This document shows positions 12,974 to 46,381 of a stretch of 64,000 nucleotides of DNA, one piece after another; within the stretch, counting starts at the first letter, position 1; each line of letters starts with the position of its first letter. Both the position numbers and the translations under genes were made by a program. The notes below the pieces were generated by a model. That model was not told where the DNA came from. It was given only the letters and a program-made list of their open reading frames with translations, and ran no database searches. This stretch comes from Selaginella moellendorffii (taxonomy: Eukaryota; Plantae; Lycopodiophyta): NCBI RefSeq assembly GCF_000143415.4, contig NW_003314441.1, positions 37,042 to 101,041 on the forward strand. The letters are read 5' to 3'.

Positions 12974-14462
<1,489 letters not shown>

Positions 14463-14678
14463 ACCCTGCTTCCTTGGCCTGGGCGTGCGCGTGGCTCCAG
14501 GAACCCTAAAAACCCCTCCCCCCCATTTCCTCCGCTCCACTCCACAGTCAGACTCACCACTGTTGCGCCTTTGCCCCCAACCCAACACGACACTTCTTAT
14601 TGGCCACTTTAAACCCCCCTTTGACATGGCTTTAAAAAGACGCGAATATGCGCTCGCGGACTTAGGGTACAAGTGGCT

Positions 14679-30709: not shown

Positions 30710-33278
30710 ATGGATTCTCCTAAACGGGAGCAGTGTCTGCCTCCCTGCGGGGAACTCCAGGTGAGTATGACATCCTCTCTCCTCGCTCATCCAGCCGCTA
30801 GCTCTGCTGTGCAGGGGTCTCCACTGTTTAAGTTCCTGTGTAGCCTTTCTCCTATCAAGCAGGCCAAGTCCGCTCATGTCGCCCAGACGTACTCGGAACT
30901 AAGCTTCCCAGCACCTCTTCCAGTCTTCGTCTCCCCCAAAAAGAAGAGGTGAGGAGCTGCCTACGTTGGCCTTGGTACCATGTCTCTCACGTGTGCTGCT
31001 CAGAGAACGCGCTGGAGTTGCTCGCACTAGCGGCCCTACTTCTCGCGAGTCCGAAACGACTGAGGCGTCCGATTTAACTTGCTCACCTCCTGCAGAAGAA
31101 GTGCTCACCCAGCAACAGAAAAACACGTCCGATACATCAGCAGACGCTACCGAAGAAATACCCTCCAAACAAGATGCAACGCTGGCTAGTTTTCTTCCTG
31201 GCCAAGACCATACCCCCGAGGGTGCAGCGTCATTCAAGGACTTGGGTGACGAGCCGGACAGTGAGGCTGCCAATTTGGAGGTTGCAAACATGGAAAAGCT
31301 GGCAATTACTGGACACACCGATCACACAGACTCTACTGTCGAAGATGTGCGGGTAAGCCAGCGAATGCACATTCCAAAGCATCTGACCGTTTCTTTGTCC
31401 CGGCTTGCAGACGAGTAGGAACCAGCGGGGAGCCAGACGGAGATGCCTGGATTTTCAGTCCGACTCGCAAGGGTCGAATGCCGAAAATCTTAGCTGCATT
31501 GTGTCCCCTGGTGTCTCCTCGACGCCAACCTCCGGGCCAGAGTCTCTTAGTACGCTTATTAGCAGTTTGTCCGGTTCTGCATGCTCTGATTCTTGTAAGA
31601 AGCTCATGCGGGAGGCCGTCCCATCTGGTATCGGTTTGCATCTCAACAGTCTGGGACTGCTCACGGCACCACGAGGGGTTTCACTTCAGTCGCTCGTATC
31701 GTGCTCGCAAGAGATGCAAAGTGCTGAAGGATTTGCCTTGTGTGGACAAGGTCCTATGAACTTGCGGCCTGGCCTTTTGTTCTCAGTCGTGGAGAAGACA
31801 AGAATGGAGCAGGAGGTGCAAGGTACTTCTGGTTCCCAGGAAGGCTTACTTACGTCAACTACGTGCGTCCGATCTCTTACGCTTGGTATTCAAGCAATGG
31901 ACGAGGGTACTCCGTTTGGGATTGAACAGGTGGTGACACCAGGGAGGAAGCGCTTGTCAATGCAAAGCGATTCCATGGATGGTGAAATGGGCCGGACTCC
32001 TAAAAAGAGGAGGTAGTATCTCATATTCTTATGGCTTTGCAAACTTATCTTGCTTGCAGGAAGTCTCTTGGAGAAAAAGCTGGCGACGGCTGCAAGCGAT
32101 GTCACTGCAAAAAGTCGAAGTGCCTAAAACTGTGAGATTGCATTGCATGTGGCTTTGAAGGTTTCTGACGATTTGCTTAACAGATATTGCGAATGCTTTG
32201 CCGCTGGAGTCTATTGCCTTGACTCTTGCGCCTGTCGGGACTGCTTCAACAAGCCCGAGTTTGCTGACACAGTCATGGGAACCCGTCAGCAAATCGAAAC
32301 TCGTAATCCATTAGCATTTGCTCCCAAAATTGTACAGACATCTGATAACACACCGACGGAAGGGGTTGGTATCTGGTTTTCGCCCTCGCGACATGCCATG
32401 ACTAACAGCCTCTTTTGCATTGCAGCCCAATTGCCCCGATACAACAGGATCTGCTAGGCACAAGCGCGGCTGTAACTGCAAGAAGTCGCTGTGTCTGAAA
32501 AAGTACTGCGAATGCTACCAGGTACAATCAAGTCAAGTCTTTCTGCTTATACTTACCATGTGCGCTTGGTTTTCATCTGTCTAAAGGCTGGCGTTGGCTG
32601 TTCGGATGGATGCAAGTGTAATGGCTGCAAAAACATTTACGGCATCAAGAAAGGCACGTCTTTCCTGCTGGTTTCATGTTTCGATTTTGACGGTTGTCTC
32701 TGTTCCAGCTCAAGACGAAGCTGATCCATTGGAAGACCCACTCCAGATCAATAGCAACAGTTCTTTAACCAGCCTCAGCCCAATAACCCCCACGCTGATC
32801 CAGCATGCATCTGTGTAAGACGTGCTTCCTGTTTTTTCATTTTTGATGAATGACGTTGGTTACTTTGTGTAGATGCACCAGCATTGTGCCATGCGACTCG
32901 ACAAATACGCCTTCATCGACAACTCCAGCCACATCAGTGAGCAAGCTCATGGACTCCAACAGCTTGGCTTGGGACGAGACCCCCGAGTTTCTGAGAGCCC
33001 CGCGCTCGTCTCCCAGGTCGATGCTCAACGACCTGCTGTCGTCAGACGAAGCTCCCGAGTTCATGAGAGCTGAGCGCTCGTCTCCCAGGTCGGGGATCAA
33101 GGGCTCGCCAAAGCAAAAGCGAGTGGCCCCTCCCAACGCCGGCCTGCTCGCCGCTGGTGGCGCCCCGTCGTCTTCCTCGGTCCTCAAGAGCGGCAGGAAG
33201 CTCACTCTGCAATCACTCCCGTCACTTCCGCCGGTGACACCGTTTTCGTTTCCACACCAGGGATGCAAACGTAGCTGA
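30710..33278 (+). CDS. Tesmin/TSO1-like CXC (CPP) protein, multi-exon
   Basis: [15 protein letters not shown]-terminus; [32 protein letters not shown] hinge, [21 protein letters not shown]; C-terminal [12 protein letters not shown]. Confidence 0.92.
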
Positions 33279-33522
33279 AGGAAAAGGCCGCGCTCCTTCA
33301 CTTTCGGTAAAACAAACTTGTATTTGTATGGACCAAGTGGGATGCTGCCTGTCCCAAAGTGAGATATATATATATATATATATATAGAGTGAAATGGTCC
33401 TCGTTGACTGTCCAAGCAGAATGTCAACGGGGTGGCACGTCTTTGACGAGGGATGGGGCATGTTCGATCAGCTGGCCGCAAGAAGAGGACATGACTTTGC
33501 TCGAAGTTCGTCGCTATGGATG

Positions 33523-33530
33523 TATAAAAG
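33523..33530 (+). promoter_or_regulatory. TATA box of the CLE-like gene
   Basis: TATAAAAG about 60 nt upstream of the ATG at 33589. Confidence 0.55.
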
Positions 33531-33588
33531 GAGCGTCCTTCTCTTTTGGGATGCGGCACTGGACACTCTATTCACATTCTTGCCTTTA

Positions 33589-33806
33589 ATGATGCCAATC
33601 ACAGCGGATTTTCGAAGGCAATGCTGCTGGTGCTTGATCCTTGTTTCTTTTGTTGCTTTGGCGATGATCCAGGTGGTGGAGGCCTCCGGAAGTAAGCCAC
33701 TCACTCACCCGTAAGCCTACCAGTTTCTAACACTGTTGTTATTGCAGAAAGGCATTGCGCTCGAAGGTGTGTGCCTTCTGGACCCGATCCATCGGGTAAC
33801 AAGTAA
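33589..33806 (+). CDS. CLE: CLE-like secreted peptide precursor, 53 aa, 2 exons (33589-33691, 33748-33806)
   Basis: Splicing GTAAG (33692)...CTAAC...TGCAG (33747) gives MMPITADFRRQCCWCLILVSFVALAMIQVVEASGKRHCARRCVPSGPDPSGNK*, a signal peptide plus the dodecamer RCVPSGPDPSGN. Confidence 0.78.
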
Positions 33807-33936
33807 CCCAAAATGCAGCCACCAAAATGTTGTAAATAAATAATCGGGCAACAAGTATGCTTGTAAATAATAATACACTTGAAAAGTTTTTGGTTGACCA
33901 TGCGGACGGGCTAGGGTCTTCTTGTTAAGGGCAGCG

Positions 33937-35001
33937 ATGGTGGTGCGCTACAGCCGAGAGGAGCTCCAGGCGCTGAGGCACGACGCCTCGGAGGAACTGC
34001 CCGCGGGTGTAGATGCCGCAGGTATGCTCCATGACAATGTGGTGGTGAGGAGCAAGAGGAAGCGACGTAGGCCTTCTAGGGCTAGCAGCAGCAGCAACAA
34101 CAAGCGCAGGAGAGTGTCGGCCGATTCTGACGAAGATGGGGATTTTGGGGGGATGTTTGACGAAGAAAACACCGTCTTCCCGGGCTTCTTGGAGGGCCAC
34201 GATGGCGATTACAACATTGAAGACGACGAGGACGACTACCAAGACCTTGGGCCGATCCAGAAGGTCGCTTTCGTGGTAGAGGGAGAGCCCGACTTCGACA
34301 AGGAGGAACCAGACGATGGATGGGAGTACGTGCGTCGTGTCAAGTGGGAGGCAGCAAGGTACCCAGCCGTCAAAGTTGCTACCATCTCTCCCCAACACTC
34401 TGTGGACAAACGAACTCACTACGTCCCAGTGGTTCCGGCTATTTCGGCTTGCGATCCTCAGCTCCTGCCAACACAGGACTGGGAAGCCAAGTTCTTGCTC
34501 ACTTTCGCCAGCCTCAGGTCTAGGTTCGAAGCTCGCGAGCCAAGCTCGTCTCACAGGCCCGTGCCGCACATGAAAGACGACTGTGGATGGAAGGCTCTGT
34601 GCTTTGGCAAGGGAGGTGGTGGTGTGGAGGATGGCGTCCCCGTGGCCGAGGAGCTGGAGGAATTTGGTGCCGGGCCACTGCTTTTCTACCGGGGAGAGCT
34701 CCACACTCTGCTCGACTTGGATGAAGTGAGTCGAGCAGATCTGCTGCAAAAGCACATAAGGTGGTTTCAAGGCTTGGATCACCTCCCCCACGACAGGGCA
34801 GTGTGGCTCTTTGCCTTGACTGCAGCCGTGGGCAAGCCCATTGATGCAGAGACGAGCTTTGCCCTGAGGACGCTATTGAGAAGCTGCGCTGCAATCCGAG
34901 CTTCCAAAACGTTTAAAGACCAAGGCGAGCTCCAGATGCTCAACATGATTATCACAGTTGCTGGTAAATACTTTGGACAGGATGACAGTCATTGCTTATA
35001 A
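33937..35001 (+). CDS. GEMIN2: Gemin2/SIP1 (SMN complex), intronless
   Basis: EGEPDF...PDDGWEYVRRVKWEA...VKVA; WLFALTAAV.KP..AET..ALRTLLR; LNMIITVAGKYFGQ. Confidence 0.9.
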   Translation: MVVRYSREELQALRHDASEELPAGVDAAGMLHDNVVVRSKRKRRRPSRASSSSNNKRRRVSADSDEDGDFGGMFDEENTVFPGFLEGHDGDYNIEDDEDDYQDLGPIQKVAFVVEGEPDFDKEEPDDGWEYVRRVKWEAARYPAVKVATISPQHSVDKRTHYVPVVPAISACDPQLLPTQDWEAKFLLTFASLRSRFEAREPSSSHRPVPHMKDDCGWKALCFGKGGGGVEDGVPVAEELEEFGAGPLLFYRGELHTLLDLDEVSRADLLQKHIRWFQGLDHLPHDRAVWLFALTAAVGKPIDAETSFALRTLLRSCAAIRASKTFKDQGELQMLNMIITVAGKYFGQDDSHCL

Positions 35002-35043
35002 GAAAAAGGAGGGAAAATTCTAGAAAAGCGCGTTCCTTCCTAC

Positions 35044-36213
35044 TTAGATGGTATTTAGCTTCTTCTCCAGCAGCTCCTCCTCCACCTCGCAGTAGTCCAT
35101 TGCCAGCTTGAGCCGTCTCTTCATGCTCGAGTACTCAGCAATTTGGTCCTCCAAGTTCCTCTTGCGGCTCTCCCGCGATCCTGCCTTGGTCAGCTCGCTT
35201 CCCAGCTTATGGCTTGCCATGACGGAGTGTAGCAGTGAAGCCGCTATGGTGAGCACCGGATCCGAGCTCATGGCGGTTCCTCCATCGCCACCCTTGAGTG
35301 CCGCCTTGAGTTCGTCGCCAACTCTGTCTTCGCCACCCTTCTTGGCCGGAGTCATCTCCACGTCTCCATTGCTGTCCTCGCCAGCATGGTCGGCCGGGAG
35401 ATCTCGCCCCCACAGCTGCTTGAACACGGCCTGCAGTGCATCCACGGCCTGGCTTCGCTTCCGCCCACCCGGCTTGCTGCTCTCGTACTTGTCAAACTTG
35501 GCCTTCATGCGCCGGTGCTTGTCGAATATCTGTTCCTTGGTGAAATCGGTGGACAGCTTCCCCTTGAGCGAGTGGCAAAGCTCCTCCCAGTAAGGGTCCG
35601 TCTTGGGCTTGTCGTGGAAGTCGGAGCCGGCCTTGAGATCGTCCAGCATTTGCTGTGCCAGAATGCTCTCGTCTTTGGCCACCCACAGGCCCTTCTTCGG
35701 CCCCGACTTGGGCTGCTGCGGTGCGTCCGTGCCAGCGCCATCCTTATCTTGTTGCTGCTGCTGCTGCGCCTGTGATGCTGGGGCCGCTGGTGCTGGCACT
35801 GCTGGCGGCGGCGGCGGTGGTGGCGGCGGTGCTACTACTGTGTCAGTCTCTTCACTAGACCTGTCCACGCTTTGACGCTTCTTAGCCTTGCGAGCAGCCT
35901 TAGTCTCCTTCTCCTTGTTGTCCCTCTCCTTTTCCTTGAGGTTCTCCCTCTCCTTCCCTTTGTCCTCCTTCTTCACCACTTTGTTGGGCTTCTTGGGCGG
36001 GGGCGGGGGCGGCTCTGGCGCCTTGACAACCTCCGTGCTGCTGTCATCCGACTCCGACTCCGTCTCCGTCTCCGACTCTTCCTTGGCCGGGACCGCGACC
36101 TTCTGAGCTGCCACTGCCTTCTTCACTTCCTTGGGAGCCGGGGGAGGAAGAGGGGCGGTGTCGTCGGAGCTCTCGTCAGCTAGGATGCTCTCTCTCGTTT
36201 TCTTCTTCGCCAT
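35044..36213 (-). CDS. GeBP/STOREKEEPER-like DNA-binding protein
   Basis: LWVAKDESILAQQMLD...FTKEQIFDKHRRMKAKF...FKQLWG core; acidic, Pro-rich N-terminus and coiled-coil C-terminus. Confidence 0.75.
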   Translation of the reverse strand: MAKKKTRESILADESSDDTAPLPPPAPKEVKKAVAAQKVAVPAKEESETETESESDDSSTEVVKAPEPPPPPPKKPNKVVKKEDKGKERENLKEKERDNKEKETKAARKAKKRQSVDRSSEETDTVVAPPPPPPPPPAVPAPAAPASQAQQQQQQDKDGAGTDAPQQPKSGPKKGLWVAKDESILAQQMLDDLKAGSDFHDKPKTDPYWEELCHSLKGKLSTDFTKEQIFDKHRRMKAKFDKYESSKPGGRKRSQAVDALQAVFKQLWGRDLPADHAGEDSNGDVEMTPAKKGGEDRVGDELKAALKGGDGGTAMSSDPVLTIAASLLHSVMASHKLGSELTKAGSRESRKRNLEDQIAEYSSMKRRLKLAMDYCEVEEELLEKKLNTI

Positions 36214-36306
36214 TCTGACAAGAGACCACGAGTAACAAGCTCACCTTGCTCCGCCGATAAAGGAACCCTAGCTATAAAACCTTGACAGAATATTTTCTGG
36301 AATTAA

Positions 36307-39297
36307 CTAGCTCGCTTTGATGCTGTTGGACAGCGTCACGTACGTGGAGGCCGGAGGCCAGCACGACTCGGACAGGAATCGCTGCCCAGCTTGCCTTCCT
36401 CGCTCCACATCACCGTGCAAGGTGCACGACGCAAGCAGGGCCGACCACGCGTCGCCGCTCACCTCCGCCGCCAACTCCTCCGCCTCCGCCAGGCGTCCGC
36501 TCCGACCCAGCAGATCCACAATGCAGCCTTTTTCGATGCTGCTGGGAGCCACTCCAAAGTCCCGCTCCATGTCCCGGAACGCCTGCCATGCGCCTTCCAA
36601 GTCTCCCGAGTGGCTACACGCGCTCAGCAAACTCACAAACGTACAGTTTGCTGGATCCACTCCCTGCTGCTGCATCCTGTGGAACAAGCTCTTTACTGTC
36701 TCCGTGACTCCCTGCCGGGCACAGGCCGCCATGAACACGTTCCACGCCCCCGACGAGCTTCTGTGCCATGCAATCCTCTCAAAATGCCTGCTCGACTCCG
36801 CCAGCTTCCCACACCTGGCGTAGAGGCTCACCAGTCCGGTGGCCACGCCCGTGTCCGACTCGAGTCCCAGCTCCCGGACTAGCCTGTCAACCGCTCGGCC
36901 TTGCTCGAGTGCTGTGGACTCGGACAAGGAGTCGAGCACAACAGCCAGGGTGACCCTGCTCGGCTTGCACCCTTCCACCAGCATGCCTCTCAAGAGCGTC
37001 ATGACCACCTCATCATCACGTCTCGTCACGTCCTTGGAACAGGCGGAAATGAGCGCGTTCCACACCACCACGTCTCTCTCGGTCGTCACCTCAAACACCC
37101 GCCTCGAGTCCTCCCACCTCCCGCACTCCCCATACATGTCGATCAAGCTGCTCGCCACCTCTGCGTCGTCTTCCAGCCCGAGCTCGCGGACGTGCTGGTG
37201 GATGATGCCGCCTTGGCACAAGTTGCCATGCTTTGCGAAAATGCTGAGCGCCGTGATCAGCGTCACCTTGCTAGGAGTCACTCCTTCCAGTCGCATCCTC
37301 TGCAAGCATGCCACCGCCTTTTCACGGCAGTCCTCCTCGTCGCTTGTCTCGTCGTAGGCCGACAGCAGCGCCGTCCATGACACCACGTCTCGCTTCTCCA
37401 TTCCCGAGAACACCACCTCCGCGTCGCGTGCACACCAACACCTGGCGTACATGTGAATCAGGCTGTTGCTAACTTGAGTGCTGGATCCCAGCCCGCGTTC
37501 GCGAATCCACTCGTGAATCTTCTTGCCTTCCTGCGTGATCGCGACCTGACAACCACCGCTGCAGCAGCTCACTGCTGTTGCAGCCGCCATCAGAGTGATT
37601 CCGTTTGGCTTCTCTCCTTGGAGCTGCATTCTCCTCAGCAGATGCAATGCCTCCTCCCAGTAGCCGCTCTCCGCAAACGCTCCCAACATTGCGTTCCACG
37701 AGACCACGTCCCTTCCCAGTCCTTCGAAGGCTCTCTCGGCCTCCACTAGCATTCCGCACTTGCCATGCACGCTTATGAATGCGTTACGGACCAGAGTGTC
37801 CGTCGCCACTCCAGCCTCTACTGTGCAAGTGCCAAGAAGCTGCCCGAGCTGCATTTTCTTCTTTTCATCCAGCCCCGCGTACGACTCCAGTGCGGAGACG
37901 ATGGTGAACCGGTCCGGCTGCTGGCCGTCGAGAAGCATCTGCAAAAACAGCAGCCACGCACCTCCAGAGTCGTCGTGGTTTGCATGAGCGGTGATCATAA
38001 CGTTCCACAACACACTGTCCCTATGCACCATGGTGTCAAACACGTCTCGCGCCCGCCCCAGCTCCCCAAACTCTGCGTACAACTTGACAAGGACGGTCTG
38101 GATGACCACGTCCACTGCGATGCCGGCGTCGGTCATGCAATCCACCAGGCCCTGCAGCGTCACTGGCACGTCGCACGCCGTGAAGATCCTCGCAAAGCTA
38201 ACTTCGTCTGGAGATGACGCACCATCGAGGAGCATATTTTGAAACAGCACCATCGCTTCCTCTTTGAAACCGAGCTCGACGTAAAGACCGATCATGGTGT
38301 TCCAGGAAGCACTCGTCTTTACGTATGCGGCGCAGTCGAATATCCCCCTGGCCTTTTCGACACCACCCCCGCATTTCCCAAACATGTTGAGCAGCGCATT
38401 CACCACGGGAGCGTCCGTCCGGCACTCGTGCTCGGAGATACAAGCGTGAATCCGGCTGGCGTCTGCTAGCAAGTCCGGGGTAGAGCAGGCCGTCATAACG
38501 TTGATTAAGGCGATCTTATCAGGCGTCACTCCCTCGAGGTGCATCGAGTAGAAAGTTGTCACTGCTTCCTTGTTCCTGCCATTGCTCACGTAGGCGGCCA
38601 TCAAAACGCTCCATGGTGCAGAGCGCTCGTGGCACACTGTGCTCTCGAACACCAGCCGTGCATCTCGCAAGCTCCCACACTTGCCATACATGTTCATCAG
38701 TGTTGTTCCCACGAAACTGTCCAACTCGTAGCCGCTGTCCAAGATCAAAGTGTGTAGCAGCTTTCCCTGTGCAAGGTGGTGACGAGAGTTGAAAGCCTTA
38801 AGTAGATTGACGAAGGTGACGTTGTTTGGAGGCACTCCTTCGAGTTGCATTCTCTGGAATAGCATCATGGATTCTTGGAACATGGTATCTTGACCAGCAT
38901 ACACCGCAATGAGAGAGCTCCAGGATATGACATTCGGCTCCAGGATGCGGTCAAACGCCTCTTGGGATTCCCTCGGCTTTCCGCACTTGCCATACATGGT
39001 CACGAGGATGTTTCCAATGTAGCAATCCTGTTCCAAGTCACTCCTCACCTGCTTGAGTTCTTGGTGGATGCGTTTTGCTTGGATGTAATCCGCTGCGTTG
39101 CCGCAAGCCAGCAGCAGTCGAGCATACTCCGCTGCCGATTTCTCCCCCACTGGGCATTTATCGTCCATCCCCTGTTTCGAAGCCTGTGATCTCTGCTCCG
39201 CGGCCATAGTGGCAAACCAAATTCTTGGAGGCCATTCTCTCTTTCCCCACGCTGCTTGAGCACGAGAAAGAGCTCTTCCCGAGGGAGACAAGCGCAT
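36307..39297 (-). CDS. PLS-class pentatricopeptide repeat protein with E domain (putative organellar RNA-editing factor), intronless; start uncertain
   Basis: Repeated LVTMYGKCG, DVVSWNAML and TFVSLLSACSHSG; CIVDLLGRSGRL...WSALLASC...YVTLSN. No DYW domain. Confidence 0.92.
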   Translation of the reverse strand: MRLSPSGRALSRAQAAWGKREWPPRIWFATMAAEQRSQASKQGMDDKCPVGEKSAAEYARLLLACGNAADYIQAKRIHQELKQVRSDLEQDCYIGNILVTMYGKCGKPRESQEAFDRILEPNVISWSSLIAVYAGQDTMFQESMMLFQRMQLEGVPPNNVTFVNLLKAFNSRHHLAQGKLLHTLILDSGYELDSFVGTTLMNMYGKCGSLRDARLVFESTVCHERSAPWSVLMAAYVSNGRNKEAVTTFYSMHLEGVTPDKIALINVMTACSTPDLLADASRIHACISEHECRTDAPVVNALLNMFGKCGGGVEKARGIFDCAAYVKTSASWNTMIGLYVELGFKEEAMVLFQNMLLDGASSPDEVSFARIFTACDVPVTLQGLVDCMTDAGIAVDVVIQTVLVKLYAEFGELGRARDVFDTMVHRDSVLWNVMITAHANHDDSGGAWLLFLQMLLDGQQPDRFTIVSALESYAGLDEKKKMQLGQLLGTCTVEAGVATDTLVRNAFISVHGKCGMLVEAERAFEGLGRDVVSWNAMLGAFAESGYWEEALHLLRRMQLQGEKPNGITLMAAATAVSCCSGGCQVAITQEGKKIHEWIRERGLGSSTQVSNSLIHMYARCWCARDAEVVFSGMEKRDVVSWTALLSAYDETSDEEDCREKAVACLQRMRLEGVTPSKVTLITALSIFAKHGNLCQGGIIHQHVRELGLEDDAEVASSLIDMYGECGRWEDSRRVFEVTTERDVVVWNALISACSKDVTRRDDEVVMTLLRGMLVEGCKPSRVTLAVVLDSLSESTALEQGRAVDRLVRELGLESDTGVATGLVSLYARCGKLAESSRHFERIAWHRSSSGAWNVFMAACARQGVTETVKSLFHRMQQQGVDPANCTFVSLLSACSHSGDLEGAWQAFRDMERDFGVAPSSIEKGCIVDLLGRSGRLAEAEELAAEVSGDAWSALLASCTLHGDVERGRQAGQRFLSESCWPPASTYVTLSNSIKAS

Positions 39298-39369
39298 TGA
39301 AAAGGCAAGCTTTCCACCCTTTACAAATACCCCTGCAAGGCACACACGGGTTCATCCCGGTCATCTTGA

Positions 39370-39510: not shown

Positions 39511-40963
39511 ACTCTCTCCCCACTGTGCTTGATCTTCATTCCATCACCTTCTTCGACGTTTCCGACTTTTTTTCTCTGTGAGCTTGAGCAATAGCAGAGC
39601 TCTCAGCTTTAACACAGAACAAGAAATAAAGCAGGAAAGAAAGAGAGAGTTATCGTCGAGAGAGGATTGTGATCAGAGAGCTACAGTGGTGCTAGCACTC
39701 AATCACATTCTCATTGCCGAACAAGAGTGATCATCCAGGATTGCCTAATAAAATGAAAGAACTTCGAGCCCTTCGCTGGAAAACAAAAACATTCCTGGCA
39801 AATAAACTCTTTGTGATTAAGACAAACCTTTTTCTCTATCGAAAAACAAAAGGAAGAGACGTGCATTTTTTGAGTCAGTCGTGAAATGCCCGAGCGGAAA
39901 CGAGTGCCATTTCGTCCAAAGTGATCACGAACCATACAAAATAATTCCCATTATCTCTGTGGCATTATAAAAAATCTGCCAAATGGATCGTGCTGTCTTC
40001 TTCGAGATCTTTCGTAATTTTTCTTTTTTTGCTTACCTCAATTGATAGGGAAAAGTTTGTTTATATTGTTTCTTAAACAAGAACCAAGCTCCTCTCGTTT
40101 TGTACATATTTCCTGTGGTCAAGTTCACATTAAATCAATCGGGTGATACTCACCTGTGTTTTCTTTAATTTTCTTGATGCTCGATCTTCTGTGTCCCTTT
40201 TTCCTGATGAAAGCCAAGCTGAAAAGCCAAACGATTCAATCAATCAATGAGTTTTGGCTGATTTGTATCCTTTGGAGAAAACTTTCATTGAGTTAGAAAT
40301 TGTGGACCACGTCTTCACCCTGGAAATAAGAAAAGATAGAAAACAAGTTTTAATCTTCATGCAATCGATAAACAAAAGATTAATAAACCAGCAGCAAGAG
40401 CAGCAGCAATCATGAACACAACAGCTGTTGTGCAACAAGCACTGAAATAAAAAAAAAGGAGAATAAAAGGGAAAAGAAAGAGAACTGCATTGGAAGGCAA
40501 AACATCAATTAAATAGAGCAGTCTGGAGTAGTGAGTTTAAGCTTTTCTTCTGCATGCTGCAAATTTGGGTGATAGCAGTATTTTTGTCAATAGTGATTTT
40601 GTCACTCTAGATTCCCTGCTTGTCATACGTTTTGAAACAATTCACCAAAGGTATGGTCACATGGTGAGGAAGTCTTAAACATTAGTTGACTTAATGGATG
40701 GGCTTTCAGGCCTGGTGTTAGCAAGCACTACTATAAATGGAGAGGGACTTCATAGGGATAAAAAAAAATGATATTAGAGAATGGTGTCCCCTATATCTTG
40801 TGGTCATCCCATGACTATTTACGGATGGATGGCTCAATTGTGGAAATATGGTATTGTAATATGGGTGGTCTTATATTACTAATAAGATATTAAGAATGGA
40901 CACAATTTTAGTGTTAAAGGCAAGTACATTAATAATACTTTTTAGGTGTCTAAAGTGGGACTG

Positions 40964-42810
40964 TGTAAGCAATTAACTCCTTATAGTGTCATATGCTAAA
41001 ATATCCCGAAAATCATGACTAGAACAATAAAAAGTTTATCAAATGAGATTAAGTCCAAGATCAAGTCTAATACCAACTCCAAGACCAAGTTCGAGATCAA
41101 GTCCGAGATTCAAGATTGGGTCCAAGACCAAGTCTGAGATTGAGTTCAAAACCAAGTTTGAGGTCAATTCCGAGATTGAATCTGAGACTAAATTTGAATA
41201 TGAATACAGATTGTGGAGTGAACGCTCAAAATCATCATCCCCCACCCCCGCCCCCTGCAGGGAAGCCTTTGCAAGGGGTTCCAAACGTATAATAGGGATA
41301 ATGAAGTTAAATACCTAATCTTGAAAGAACTCTCCAATAGTACTTTTAAACCAAATTGAAGTTGGGATTAGGGGTTAGTGGCCTTTGATGGGAGTGAGTA
41401 TGGACTCAAGGGATGCTAAAGAGGCCTCCCAAAGAATTGCACAAAAGCAACTCCCACTCTTAGATAAGAAATTGATTGCAATGCTCTTAACTCATATGGA
41501 GTGGTGCTCTATTTAAGTACTATACAACTTATTGGTCCTTGCTCCTTCCTAAGGGCTTGAGCATTCTTTTTGGGACAGAAGTGAGGGAGTCAAGATACCT
41601 ATACCAGGCTATTAAGCCACAGTGTTTCCCTTTGTTGTTTCCAAGTAAAAGATGCACTCAAGGCTTGGGATTTAGAGGATCCTATTAATAAACTTTGTGT
41701 ATTATGGGATGTTGAGAACTTCAAAACTTGGTATGCTTAATTGCTTGTACTTATGAGGAGTGTAGCCAAATTTTAAGTTCAATCTAACATAAGGAGAGGG
41801 ATGGAGAGAAAGTTTGAGAATATGTGGAGTAAAACCTTGTTGGTTATATAATAAATAGCTGGACCTAAGTATTGATCAAGCTAGAGTTGGTAAGATAGGT
41901 GGGATCCTTAGTAAAGGAATTTAATTAATGCCAAGGCAAAGATGTTCGAATAAATGAGGTAAGTTAGTAAACTGGTAAAGGAAAATTTATAACTTACAAT
42001 TTGGTATAAAATTTTTTTCTATAGTTCTAGCAAAGGATAAGGTGGATTGCTATGAAATGGCTAAGGTAGATAGAACCTCCTCCAGAGATGGAGCCTTTGA
42101 TTGAACAAAAAGTTGTGGATGAGGAATCCCTAGATGAAGACGACTCAAGTGAGAAAACTTCAAAACAAGAATTTGGGGGTGAGGTTTAGTTGTCCAAGGC
42201 TTGATTGGATACTCTAAAAGGATAATTAGTACGTACTAATGCTCTACTAAAGACCCTCATACGCAAGCTAAAGCGTGATGAGAAACAATTCGAGGAGTTG
42301 GGATTATAGTTAAGCAAAGATATTCAAGAGACAAGCTTAATTCATAAATGATTGATCTGGCCACAGAACTTGATGAGATTCTAGTGCTGTGCAAACAAAA
42401 TTTGTAAGATAGAGTGGAGAAATTTGCTAATAAGCATCACAAATTTTGGGAATATAAGGTGGGTGATATTATTTTTATATGAGTGATCTTTTCATTAAAT
42501 GAGCGGCGAAACACCTTAGTGCTATTGTGAAATGGGAAGAGTGATAAAATTTCTCATAGATATGTTAGTCCATATAAAGTGTTAGAGTGCATTGGTAAGG
42601 TGGCTTATCGGATGCAGCTATCAACTAGAGTAAAAATTCATTTGGTATTTTATGTTAGCCAATTGAAAGATATACTATCTTGGAGTGAAAGGCCCAATGC
42701 TTCCTTGATATATATAGATATAGAAGATGGACCAAGAACTTTAGCAAAGTTCTCTAGAATAGGTGATCATTAGTACAACTTATTCTTAGGATAGAAGGGG
42801 GGAGAATTGT
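40964..42810 (+). mobile_element. Decayed Ty3/gypsy element: LTR 40964-41998, PBS, integrase C-terminal remnant, PPT
   Basis: TGTAAG...CTTACA followed by TTGGTAT; PYKVLECIGKVAYRMQL...IHLVFYVSQLK at about 42570-42670; AGAAGGGGGGAGAA followed by TG at 42793-42809. Confidence 0.75.
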
Positions 42811-44559
42811 TAGATGCCAGCTTTGACTCCATGGTTAACATGGGTTAAAGGGAAGCTCAAAGGCATGGAATTAGGGTAAGGGTTAACTTATCTTAGAGCT
42901 CATAATGGACCAATGGGGTAGTGGAGCTCGGGGGTGGTTGGGTGGTGAACCTTAAGAGGAGATTTAGCATAATCTAGAAAAACTAAATCTTTATCTTTTA
43001 GCACTGAGTTTTAACAGTGTTAGGTGTTATAAATTTGTATTGCTAAGATGTGGCATTTATGTTACATTTTGTCAAATTGAGTTGGCACTAGATACTAGTG
43101 TAAAACTTTGTAGTAGTGATTGTGGTGTTTTTTGATTGATGATCAAGTCATTGTGATTTTTATATCATATTCTAGTGATTGTGAGAAATGTGTTTATAAA
43201 GTTGTTTGGTCAAAAAATGATCAATCTTAAGTGATTGATAGTGAAACTAATTTACTTGCATGCAGTAGCATTGTAATAACTTTTGCTAAGTTCTCAATAA
43301 TGATCCATTATGCTAAGCTTAATTTGGTACCTTAGTTCCTTGAGTTTGCCCATTGGAGTTTTGGAAAAGGTTATGGCTTATTAGTGAGTGTATAAGCACT
43401 TGGAATAAATTTTTGGATGGAGAAAGTGTGTAGCTAAGCATTAATATTACTAACACTTGTGTTAGTGAAGGTGGCATTTTTATGATGAGTGATTAGGAAT
43501 TTTCTTTAAAGCTTATTTTTCATGTTATTTTTCATATTAGTGTTTTGGCTTCACATTGAATCTTAAAGGTGATTGAAGAAGTGTATTAGTACAATATGGA
43601 TATCTAAGATATGGTCTTTGTTAAATGGGGCTTTTATTCACTAAACCCTATGTTGAGTTCGTTAAGACATGAAACTAGTAAAGAGCCACAACAAAAAGTT
43701 TTGTTATGCACAAAACCAACAAAGAGCAAAAAGGGTCTTCATATGGTACCTTTAGAAAATTCGTCATAACCTTTTATCTCAAGTCTTAGTCTTTGCTTTG
43801 AGTAAAGTTAGCAAGAAGATAATAGGAGAAACTTTAGGTGCCAAGGGGTTAGTTTTGAGAGGGGAGTTGCTCATGAGCTTGATAGCTCATATTGCCGTAA
43901 ATGTGGAATTCAAAACACCATTTCTTCATTAGTGTTCATAATCATTTGTGAATACTTGCCTCTCTTGTAAGATATAGTCTTTGTGATCGAGTTTAGGGTG
44001 TTCATTTTGCATTTATGGATGTTTGGTGTTAAATGTCAAATATATAAACATGTTATTAAATCTTTAAGCATATTGTTGGGTTATAACAATTTATGTTGAA
44101 ATGAACCTATGGGATGTTTTAGGTAGGAGGAAGTTGGTTGAGTGTTGGAAGTTTGTATTTTTGGACGAAAAGTCATTCTTTCTCTAGGATGGAAAACTTT
44201 CCATAAATTTTTTGTAGGCTTTTTAATAGTTAATCTATTAATCACTTTGCCCAAAAACCATTCTATTTTCATAAGCCATTGCAAACTGGTGAAAGGGTTG
44301 GAGTTCACTTCAATTGATTTAGACCTTAGTAGGTAATTTGTATGATGCAACTCAAAAGGGATGTTGAGTTTTTAGGGCTAAGGCAATTGAGTTGGATAGA
44401 GTTTAGAATTGATATAGAAAAGTGGCTATTGCACTTTTTTAGAAAAGTGATCTTTGTGACTTTCTTTTATAACATTATACTTGGTAGTAAGTTGAACCTT
44501 ATATTGGGTTAGACTTTATGAGAGTAGTGAGCTTATTGATCTTGATTTGGTCTTGATGG

Positions 44560-44955
44560 TGTAAGCTCTTAAATTTGGATTTCCCAGGAAGTCATCCAAC
44601 CCAGTACTATTCAAACCCAAGGATGCTTTACCCCAAGTATTTTAAGACCCTTAACCGATTCAAAAAGGGGGTGCACTTTTATTCATGGGCCCTTTCCCTC
44701 TATATTTGAACCCTATGGATCGTCTCTCAAGTTGTTCTCTTTGGTTGCTTACAATCCACCACGCTTCCCTACAAGTTCATGCCCTCATGAACGGAAGCTG
44801 AGAGCCACAGCTCTCCCAAGAGTCTCGCTCTCTTAACACCCTACCTCTCGGGTCGAGCCCAGTTGAAGCAAATTAGACTTGCTAGATGTCAATTAATATG
44901 TGGTGCAATTCCCCTAACCAACCAATAGAGTCAAACTTAAGACCCCTTTAATGCT
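44560..44955 (-). mobile_element. Cassandra-type TRIM, truncated (LTR 44560-44753 plus internal domain)
   Basis: 194-bp TG...CA LTR with 5S domain; internal part homologous to 46976-47180. Confidence 0.85.
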
Positions 44956-45697
44956 ACCATCTAAGTCTATACTCTCTCCCACCCAAGGCTCTTAAGCCCT
45001 AGTCTCAACCTCAAGTTAGTTTGGAAGCACCACTGAAGAGTTCCTTCAAAACTTATTCTTGGATCTCACTATCCCTACTATACTTTTGGAACCCCCTATG
45101 GCCCTCCCCCCCACAGGAGACACATGCTTTCACGGCTTTTACCCCACGACTTGTATTAGTATTCGAACTCGGTCTCGGACTTGATCTCAGACTCGATCTT
45201 AGACTCAACCTCAGACTTGATCTCAGACTTGACCTTGGACTCAGTCTTAGACTTGATCTCAGCGATCTCGGACTCGATCTCGGACCCAACCTCGGACTCT
45301 GTTTTGGACTCGATCTTGGACTCGGTCTTGGACTCAGTCTCGGACTCAGTCTTGGAATCATGCTTTTGGGGATCCTTTAACTTATAACACCTTAGGGAGT
45401 TGGTTCCTTACATGGTGGGGTGTGGCATTTATGTTGCATTTTGTTGAATAGAGTCAGCATTTGATACTCATGTAAACTTTTGAAGTAATAAGATGGGCTT
45501 GCTTGTGGTGTTGCTCAATTGATAATCAAGTCATTATGATTTCCATATCATATCTATATGATCGTGACTAATGTGTTTACAAAGTTTCTTGGTTAGACGA
45601 TAATCAACCCCAAAGTGGTTAATAGTGAAGTTAGTCTACTTGCAAGTAGTAACATTAAAGTAGCTTTGATTGAATTCTTGATGGTGGTCCAATTATA

Positions 45698-45961
45698 TGT
45701 AAGGGAACAACTCAAGAGATGATTCATAGGGTTCAAATATATAGGGAAAGGGCCCATGAACATAAATACACCCCATTTTCCAATTGATTAAGGGTTTTGG
45801 GATACTTGGGGTTAAACGTCCTTAGGTTTGAATAGTACTGGGTTGGGTAACCTCTTAAAAAGTCCAAATTTAAGAATTTACATTTGGTATCAAAGAGGCC
45901 TTAGGTCCGACTCTATTGGTTGGTTTAGGGGAATCACACCACATGTTGATTGACATCTGGC
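45698..45961 (+). mobile_element. Cassandra-type TRIM fragment (LTR, PBS, partial internal domain)
   Basis: Reverse-orientation copy; the LTR ends CA at 45882, then TTTGGTATCA (initiator-Met PBS). Confidence 0.8.
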
Positions 45962-46381
45962 ATATTAGAGAGGGAAATGAAGTTGCACAATATGTGCAAT
46001 AAAAGGTGTCGGAGACACCAAGGAAATTGACTTCGAAAAGTCAAAATTAAAAGTTCCAAGGTGAATTAGTTATATTAATAGAAGTTGAGACTACTCAAGA
46101 ATAAGTAATGGGATTGAGCTAGAGAAGGTGTCTCTAATGGGTTTAGCGAGAGCTAAACCAATAAAAGGGAGAGAACCACATGAGGTGGTCAAATGAGTTT
46201 ATATGTTGGAGACACTATGCTCCTTAGAGGTTAGACAAGGCATGGCAAGCCTTCAGTGTCAAACTATTGACGAATATAGGCTAGGTGCCAAGGATGGAAA
46301 AGGTAATATATGTTGGTGTTACTTTATAAAATGGTTTATCGTTCGATGAGGACATCGAACTTTATCTATGGGTGGTGGAGT

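Follow-up and report, generated by a model that had tools for sequence, protein, structure and literature searches.

A candidate CLE (CLAVATA3/ESR-related) gene of Selaginella moellendorffii was located on scaffold GL377745.1 (GCA_000143415.2), where 658 nt separate a TCR/CXC-domain gene from a Gemin2/SIP1 gene. Its layout and translation suggest, with a probability that we put at roughly 70%, a genuine, working, and so far unannotated member of the family. Read from its residues, the encoded dodecamer RCVPSGPDPSGN is a hybrid, with a CLV3-type front and the tail of H-type peptides, and it may be a peptide hormone and an intermediate ligand. Positions refer to the 64 kb stretch of DNA that was analyzed, called the window, and are collected in Table 1. 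When the locus was checked by direct reading and translation, every sequence feature claimed in a preliminary description of this DNA was found in its place, and the precursor came to a total of 53 codons, as had been counted there.

Gene structure and genomic setting

The upstream neighbor of the candidate, the TCR/CXC-domain gene, reaches its stop at 33278. The ORF downstream was identified as Gemin2/SIP1 (Pfam SIP1, E 3e-47) and begins with an ATG at 33937, 130 nt after the stop of the candidate; all three genes lie on the + strand. The order TCR/CXC, CLE, Gemin2/SIP1, GeBP-like, and PPR was common to both haplotype scaffolds. The TCR/CXC–Gemin2 gap was without any called gene on either haplotype (GL377745.1 and GL377595.1), and no matching product was present in the protein collections, which agrees with the earlier suggestion that gene predictors could miss the locus.

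Further features of the surrounding DNA were recorded. A (TA)n microsatellite at 33366-33387, in the presumed promoter or 3'-flank, differed between the haplotypes by a 6-nt indel and one substitution. The region 40001-46000 had a GC content of 0.35-0.39 (about 0.5 elsewhere) and a strong swing in GC skew; this AT-rich block is probably repeat or transposon sequence. An Rfam search of the whole window gave no match.

Table 1 Coordinates of the candidate CLE gene, of the neighboring genes, and of the differences found on the second haplotype.
Feature	Position in window	Strand	Remarks
TATA box TATAAAA	33523-33529	+	60 nt before the ATG; unchanged on the second haplotype; role assigned from position
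Pyrimidine patch TCCTTCTCTTTT	33536-33547	+	downstream of the TATA box, ahead of the presumed start of transcription
ATG of the candidate CLE gene	33589	+	
Exon 1, coding part	33589-33691	+	34 codons and the first base of codon 35; phase-1 junction
Predicted signal peptide	33589-33684	+	32 residues; from hydropathy and the -3/-1 rule only
Phase-1 intron	33692-33747	+	56 nt; donor GAA/GTAAGC; acceptor TTGTTATTGCAG/A (TTGCAG)
Second GTAAGC, cryptic donor	33711-33716	+	out of frame with the main acceptor
CTAAC branch site	33727-33731	+	17 nt before the AG
Exon 2, coding part	33748-33806	+	includes the TAA stop, 33804-33806
CLE dodecamer RCVPSGPDPSGN	33765-33800	+	R before it, a single K and then the stop after it; KCVPSGPDPSGN in the second haplotype
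AATAAA	33835-33840	+	29 nt after the stop; role assigned from position
Local gene-order block, opening with the TCR/CXC-domain gene and then the candidate CLE gene	30937-39345		
Gemin2/SIP1	33937-35001	+	intronless
GeBP-like gene	35044-36213	minus	
PPR gene	36307-39345	minus	
Haplotype difference, A>T	33570		leader
Haplotype difference, T>G	33646		S20A in the signal peptide
Haplotype difference, G>A	33663		synonymous
Haplotype difference, A>G	33699		intron
Haplotype difference, G>A with loss of 33713	33711		intron, shortened to 55 nt; second GTAAGC destroyed
Haplotype difference, G>A	33766		R41K; peptide position 1, giving KCVPSGPDPSGN

At the 5' end of the candidate gene, the pyrimidine patch that follows the TATA box is one that we take to resemble the plant core-promoter Y patch. 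At the 3' end, the AATAAA is possibly the poly(A) signal of the CLE gene or a promoter part of the downstream Gemin2. Upstream, the exon-1 frame has no stop as far back as an ATG at 33394, which makes an unspliced ORF of 106 codons (33394-33714), and a transcript begun further upstream would put 65 extra residues ahead of the signal peptide. An out-of-frame ATG at 33551 stands about at the expected transcription start.

In the predicted signal peptide, a basic n-region (RR) is followed by a hydrophobic core of 19 residues, and V-E-A precedes the predicted cut. Its mean Kyte-Doolittle value over 15 residues reached 2.75 (core 2.5-2.75), a hydrophobicity attained by 0/505 of the Met-started open stretches of 34 residues in the 64 kb window. 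The hydrophobic signal peptide ending in VEA that had been described initially is thus present and, as judged heuristically by hydropathy and the -3/-1 rule, would supply the secretion signal expected of a CLE precursor; the same stretch may instead act as a signal anchor.

Fourteen GT/GC-AG pairs would keep the frame, and only at 33692-33747 does a donor that fits the consensus go together with a CAG acceptor and a pyrimidine tract. Removal of this 56-nt intron, with its strong donor, CTAAC, and TGCAG acceptor, puts the dodecamer in frame, followed by K and a stop, exactly as first proposed: exon 2 completes a Lys codon and continues with RHCAR, RCVPSGPDPSGN, K, and TAA. As rebuilt heuristically from the annotated product length, the TCR gene has eight introns, between 46 and 126 nt long, of which five measure 46-58 nt, and a GTAAGC donor and TTGCAG acceptors are among their signals; since they are alike in size and signals, the proposed intron is typical of the locus.

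The frame of the motif is open over 33696-33803 only and has no start codon inside, so the motif can be expressed only through splicing. This need for splicing explains why it was missing from the list of ORFs, an absence that had been reported correctly.

A second possible donor was considered as well. The GTAAGCC at 33692 recurs 19 nt further on, at 33711, and forms a short near-duplication within the intron; on the other haplotype the second copy carries a mutation. The only acceptor that would keep the frame from the cryptic donor at 33711 is a weak AG at 33751, and the intron would then measure 41 nt. The preliminary description had held that splicing from the second donor only would speak against the gene; on the second haplotype this donor is destroyed by a GT>AT change and a 1-nt deletion, and its loss favors the first donor.

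The dodecamer among known CLE peptides

The dodecamer contains R1, V3, P4, G6, P7, D8, P9, and N12 and ends one residue before the stop, the residues and the placement by which a CLE motif is recognized. The single departure of RCVPSGPDPSGN from the expression [RH]-x-V-P-x-G-P-[DN]-P-x-H-[NH] is Gly for His at position 11. This Gly11 is common to both haplotypes, and the His11 of R-type CLV1/BAM ligands is accordingly missing. When the peptide was compared with the H-type (TDIF/CLE41-like) pattern, G11 and N12 were present; H1 was absent, position 8 was D and not Asn, and position 10 was Ser and not Ile or Val. Ser or Gly at position 11 is normal for the H-type subgroup of CLE peptides, and His11 is nearly invariant in the R-type. 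The peptide had been described as atypical, with an R-type head on a His-less tail, and this holds for the dodecamer of the window. The R-type head itself stands for GL377745.1, which encodes R1, and does not extend to the second haplotype, which encodes K1. Of the likeness of the tail to TDIF, the lack of His stood; SmCLE13/14 and the second motif of SmCLE15 are a closer comparison than angiosperm TDIF.

CLE precursors usually have about 70-150 residues and include a variable domain, which is dispensable for the function of CLV3. The precursor described here has 53 residues, and its variable domain amounts to the nine residues between the predicted cut and the motif; none of the SmCLE precursors among the PMC7552357 entries, which span 105-257 residues, is as short. 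Among the 117 motifs of Table S9 (PMC7552357), the [GS]11-N12 tail was found on H or D heads only, with no R-headed case, and Cys at position 2 was found in none.

CLV3 (RTVPSGPDPLHH) and SmCLE9-11 (RLVPSGPDPLHH) are identical to the new peptide at residues 1 and 3-9 (R-VPSGPDP) and follow the same plan, a signal peptide and then a C-terminal 12-mer. However, their tail is L-H-H, whereas the new peptide ends in S-G-N, lacks His11, and has Cys at position 2; their precursors measure 96-105 residues versus 53 in the new gene. SmCLE13/14 and SkCLE1 (HEVPSGPNPVGN and HSVPSGPNPVGN, respectively) have the VPSGP core and the Gly11-Asn12 tail in common with the new peptide, but SmCLE13/14 (...PNPVGN) have an H head, Asn8, and Val10 where the new peptide has an R/K head, Asp8, and Ser10. 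The terminal (second) motif of SmCLE15 (HSVPEGPDPVGN, ...PDPVGN) likewise has this core and tail, and it shares with the new peptide both Asp8 and a place at the extreme C-terminus. The precursors of SmCLE13/14, SkCLE1, and SmCLE15 are all much longer than that of the new gene. MpCLE2 has K at position 1, as has the second-haplotype peptide KCVPSGPDPSGN. In precursors of the AtCLE19 type, one basic residue follows the motif and is itself followed by the stop, as in the new gene; AtCLE19 differs from the new gene in that its tail is the canonical ...PLHN and its variable domain is normal.

An R-type head was also combined with a TDIF-type position 11 in the hybrids of Hirakawa et al. 2017 (CLE41-R1, CLV3-S11, and KIN; PMC5303819), although these were laboratory constructs with Ser11, whereas the new peptide is encoded in a genome and has Gly11. 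In that work, CLE41-R1 retained TDIF activity, residue 1 thus not setting specificity; CLV3-type activity required His11, CLV3-S11 being inactive yet binding CLV1; and bifunctional CLE peptides were stated as not identified in nature (PMC5303819). The SkCLE1 peptide HSVPSGPNPVGN was TDIF-like in Arabidopsis (PMC4659896).

The second haplotype and searches for relatives

The second haplotype, scaffold GL377595.1, was reached through its 97%-identical Gemin2. Alignment of the gap and translations showed that it keeps the TATA box, the ATG, the open frame, the first donor, the CTAAC, the acceptor, the stop, and the AATAAA. The sole indel in the 284-nt gene region falls in the intron, and the two amino acid replacements, S20A and R41K, are conservative. 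Divergence in the gene amounted to 7 differences in 284 nt (97.5% identity) and equaled the local background (97.8% over 7.1 kb); the haplotypes therefore show an intact gene, not constraint. The coding differences, 2 nonsynonymous versus 1 synonymous, likewise show no purifying selection.

The published catalogues of lycophyte CLE peptides, which had been named at the outset as a check on novelty, did not contain the peptide. The dodecamer RCVPSGPDPSGN was not among the motifs of SmCLE1-15 (supplement of PMC6089843), neither the eight S. moellendorffii entries in PMC7552357 nor the 117 motifs of its complete Table S9 include it, and it was not found in the supplement of PMC4659896. A search of published text for the peptide and its fragments gave no occurrence. 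The candidate is probably an addition to the CLE family, with a hybrid motif that is unusual.

Protein collections were searched with each part of the reading frame. Word-based searches with exon 1 plus read-through (41 aa) and with the 45-aa exon-2 frame of the second haplotype returned no candidate among proteins of about 23-79 residues. In phmmer, the 36-aa exon-2 frame had two matches among 1.84 billion representatives, both repetitive non-CLE proteins. According to the calibration of this search, the exact exon-2 product would score 37 bits (E 1.3e-4) and hence be listed, so these public protein sets do not contain that product. Ordinary CLE relatives, with a match of 12 residues, fall below the threshold, and the result is silent on orthologues. 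The exons, submitted as separate fragments, had no match in Pfam-A at E up to 10, in a copy from which CLE_plant PF27922 was possibly absent. A protein language-model feature search placed the CLE_plant cluster at rank 4 with a score of 0.76, a weak lead only.

Synteny was followed through Gemin2 in other Selaginella, where the only close match was the second haplotype of S. moellendorffii and the next matches were transcripts of about 40% identity. No orthologue of the candidate gene was found in other species by Gemin2 synteny or by phmmer, the latter being blind to 12-residue relatives. Seven metagenome matches to a degenerate VPSGPDPSGN pattern came from high-GC, non-plant DNA without CLE architecture and were set aside as chance.

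Possible maturation, alternative readings, and meaning

If the gene works as its layout suggests, the TATA-box promoter would give a very short mRNA, starting near 33555, from which the 56-nt intron would be spliced out. The 53-residue prepropeptide would enter the ER by its N-terminal signal peptide and be cut after Ala32. The remaining propeptide of 21 residues would have hardly any variable domain, and a subtilase-type cut between the two arginines would release the dodecamer at its N-terminal end. An SOL1-type carboxypeptidase is described as trimming the C-terminal Arg of AtCLE19, and the single C-terminal Lys of the new propeptide would be taken off by an enzyme of this type. SOL1 is cited in PMC4659896. 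Pro4 and Pro7 would probably be hydroxylated, and the 12-mer, once in the apoplast, would have a subfamily-XI LRR receptor kinase as its target, to which the C-terminal Asn would anchor it. The two cysteines of the C-A-R-R-C stretch might close a small loop within the propeptide, or the mature peptide might have a free thiol.

Because Gly replaces His11, because CLV3 activity needs His11, and because the VGN tail is TDIF-active, we expect the new peptide, by analogy, to have no classical CLV3-type activity; TDR/PXY-type action or a lineage-specific receptor preference seems more likely, although Asp8 and Ser10 weaken the case for either receptor class. Two TDR/PXY-type receptors are listed for S. 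moellendorffii (Table 3 of PMC8462819). Since it has the CLV3 head without His11, the peptide could occupy CLV1/BAM-type receptors without activating them, as CLV3-S11 does. We regard it as a long shot that the peptide is a natural hybrid ligand in this sense, either an endogenous antagonist of CLV1/BAM or one that would address both the CLV1/BAM and the TDR/PXY classes.

Several properties of the locus count against a working CLE gene: His11 is missing, Asn8 and Ile/Val10 of the TDIF-type are unmatched, Cys2 looks unpaired, no orthologue was found, conservation between the haplotypes is not in excess, and the gene is squeezed into a gap of 658 nt. An alternative reading is a young relic or a silent CLE gene, for example a truncated duplicate without the variable domain and His11, which has stopped being expressed as a functional hormone, or never was one, and which mutations have not yet disabled. 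We consider this unlikely, although the chance is a real one. The divergence at the background level, the R/K difference at position 1 of the peptide, the missing canonical His11, the near absence of a variable domain, and the failure to find an orthologue or any product in public protein sets, including those from assembled sequencing runs, would all suit such a relic. However, both alleles keep all signals and the open frame, with the only indel in the intron, and the two replacements, K for R at peptide position 1 and A for S in the signal peptide, are conservative ones. Gly11-Asn12 is moreover a normal tail in Selaginella H-type CLEs, and a spliced ORF of 53 codons is expected to be absent from protein sets.

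The three neighboring + strand genes and the 130 nt between the stop at 33806 and the Gemin2 ATG at 33937 raise the question of whether the ORF belongs to an independent gene; it could be part of a long Gemin2/SIP1 5' leader or of the 3' end of a TCR read-through, and at most an upstream ORF. Instead of a poly(A) signal, the A/T-rich elements at 33833-33876 may represent the promoter of Gemin2. A signal peptide, a near-perfect CLE motif, and a consensus intron are nevertheless unexpected for a regulatory upstream ORF, the TATA box and Y patch are at the right distance for a start of their own, and on a shared mRNA, too, translation would fall to the 5'-proximal ORF; a shared transcript appears quite improbable to us. 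A likeness arisen by chance in intergenic DNA has in its favor the shortness of the feature, the lack of a Pfam match, and the seven metagenome matches to the pattern, all of them chance. Against this, the strict CLE expression [RHK]xxPxGP[DN]Pxx[NH] had 1 match when the 64 kb window was read in all six frames, versus 0 in 300 block shuffles, and the back-translated VPSGP[DN]P DNA pattern had 1 match versus 0.01 expected. The hydrophobic N-terminus (0/505), the consensus intron, and the stop one residue past the motif are also all in order and in frame, and the host genome has a known CLE family of 15 catalogued genes, so that coincidence is hardly credible. A second, loose CLE-like string in the window, at 14558-14593, had neither a start codon nor a signal peptide, lay antisense to a weakly kinase-like ORF (13559-14593, minus), and was judged to be due to chance.

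CLE peptides govern stem-cell and vascular fate throughout land plants, and the split between R (CLV3-type) and H (TDIF-type) ligands, with separate receptors, is central to the evolution of the meristem and the vasculature. Among lycophytes, Selaginella commonly serves as the reference, with a CLE set given as 15 genes. On the evidence of this candidate gene, the 15-gene set of S. moellendorffii is not complete, since spliced genes of very small size slip past annotation, and the locus adds a peptide whose head and tail belong to different CLE branches. If the gene is silent, it would be just another decaying member of the family. If it is expressed and active, a synthetic peptide would be a simple means to test what fixes the choice of receptor in an early vascular plant. 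Should the reading as a hybrid ligand prove true, the peptide would be the natural counterpart of peptides made in the laboratory and a living R/H intermediate in an early-diverging vascular plant.
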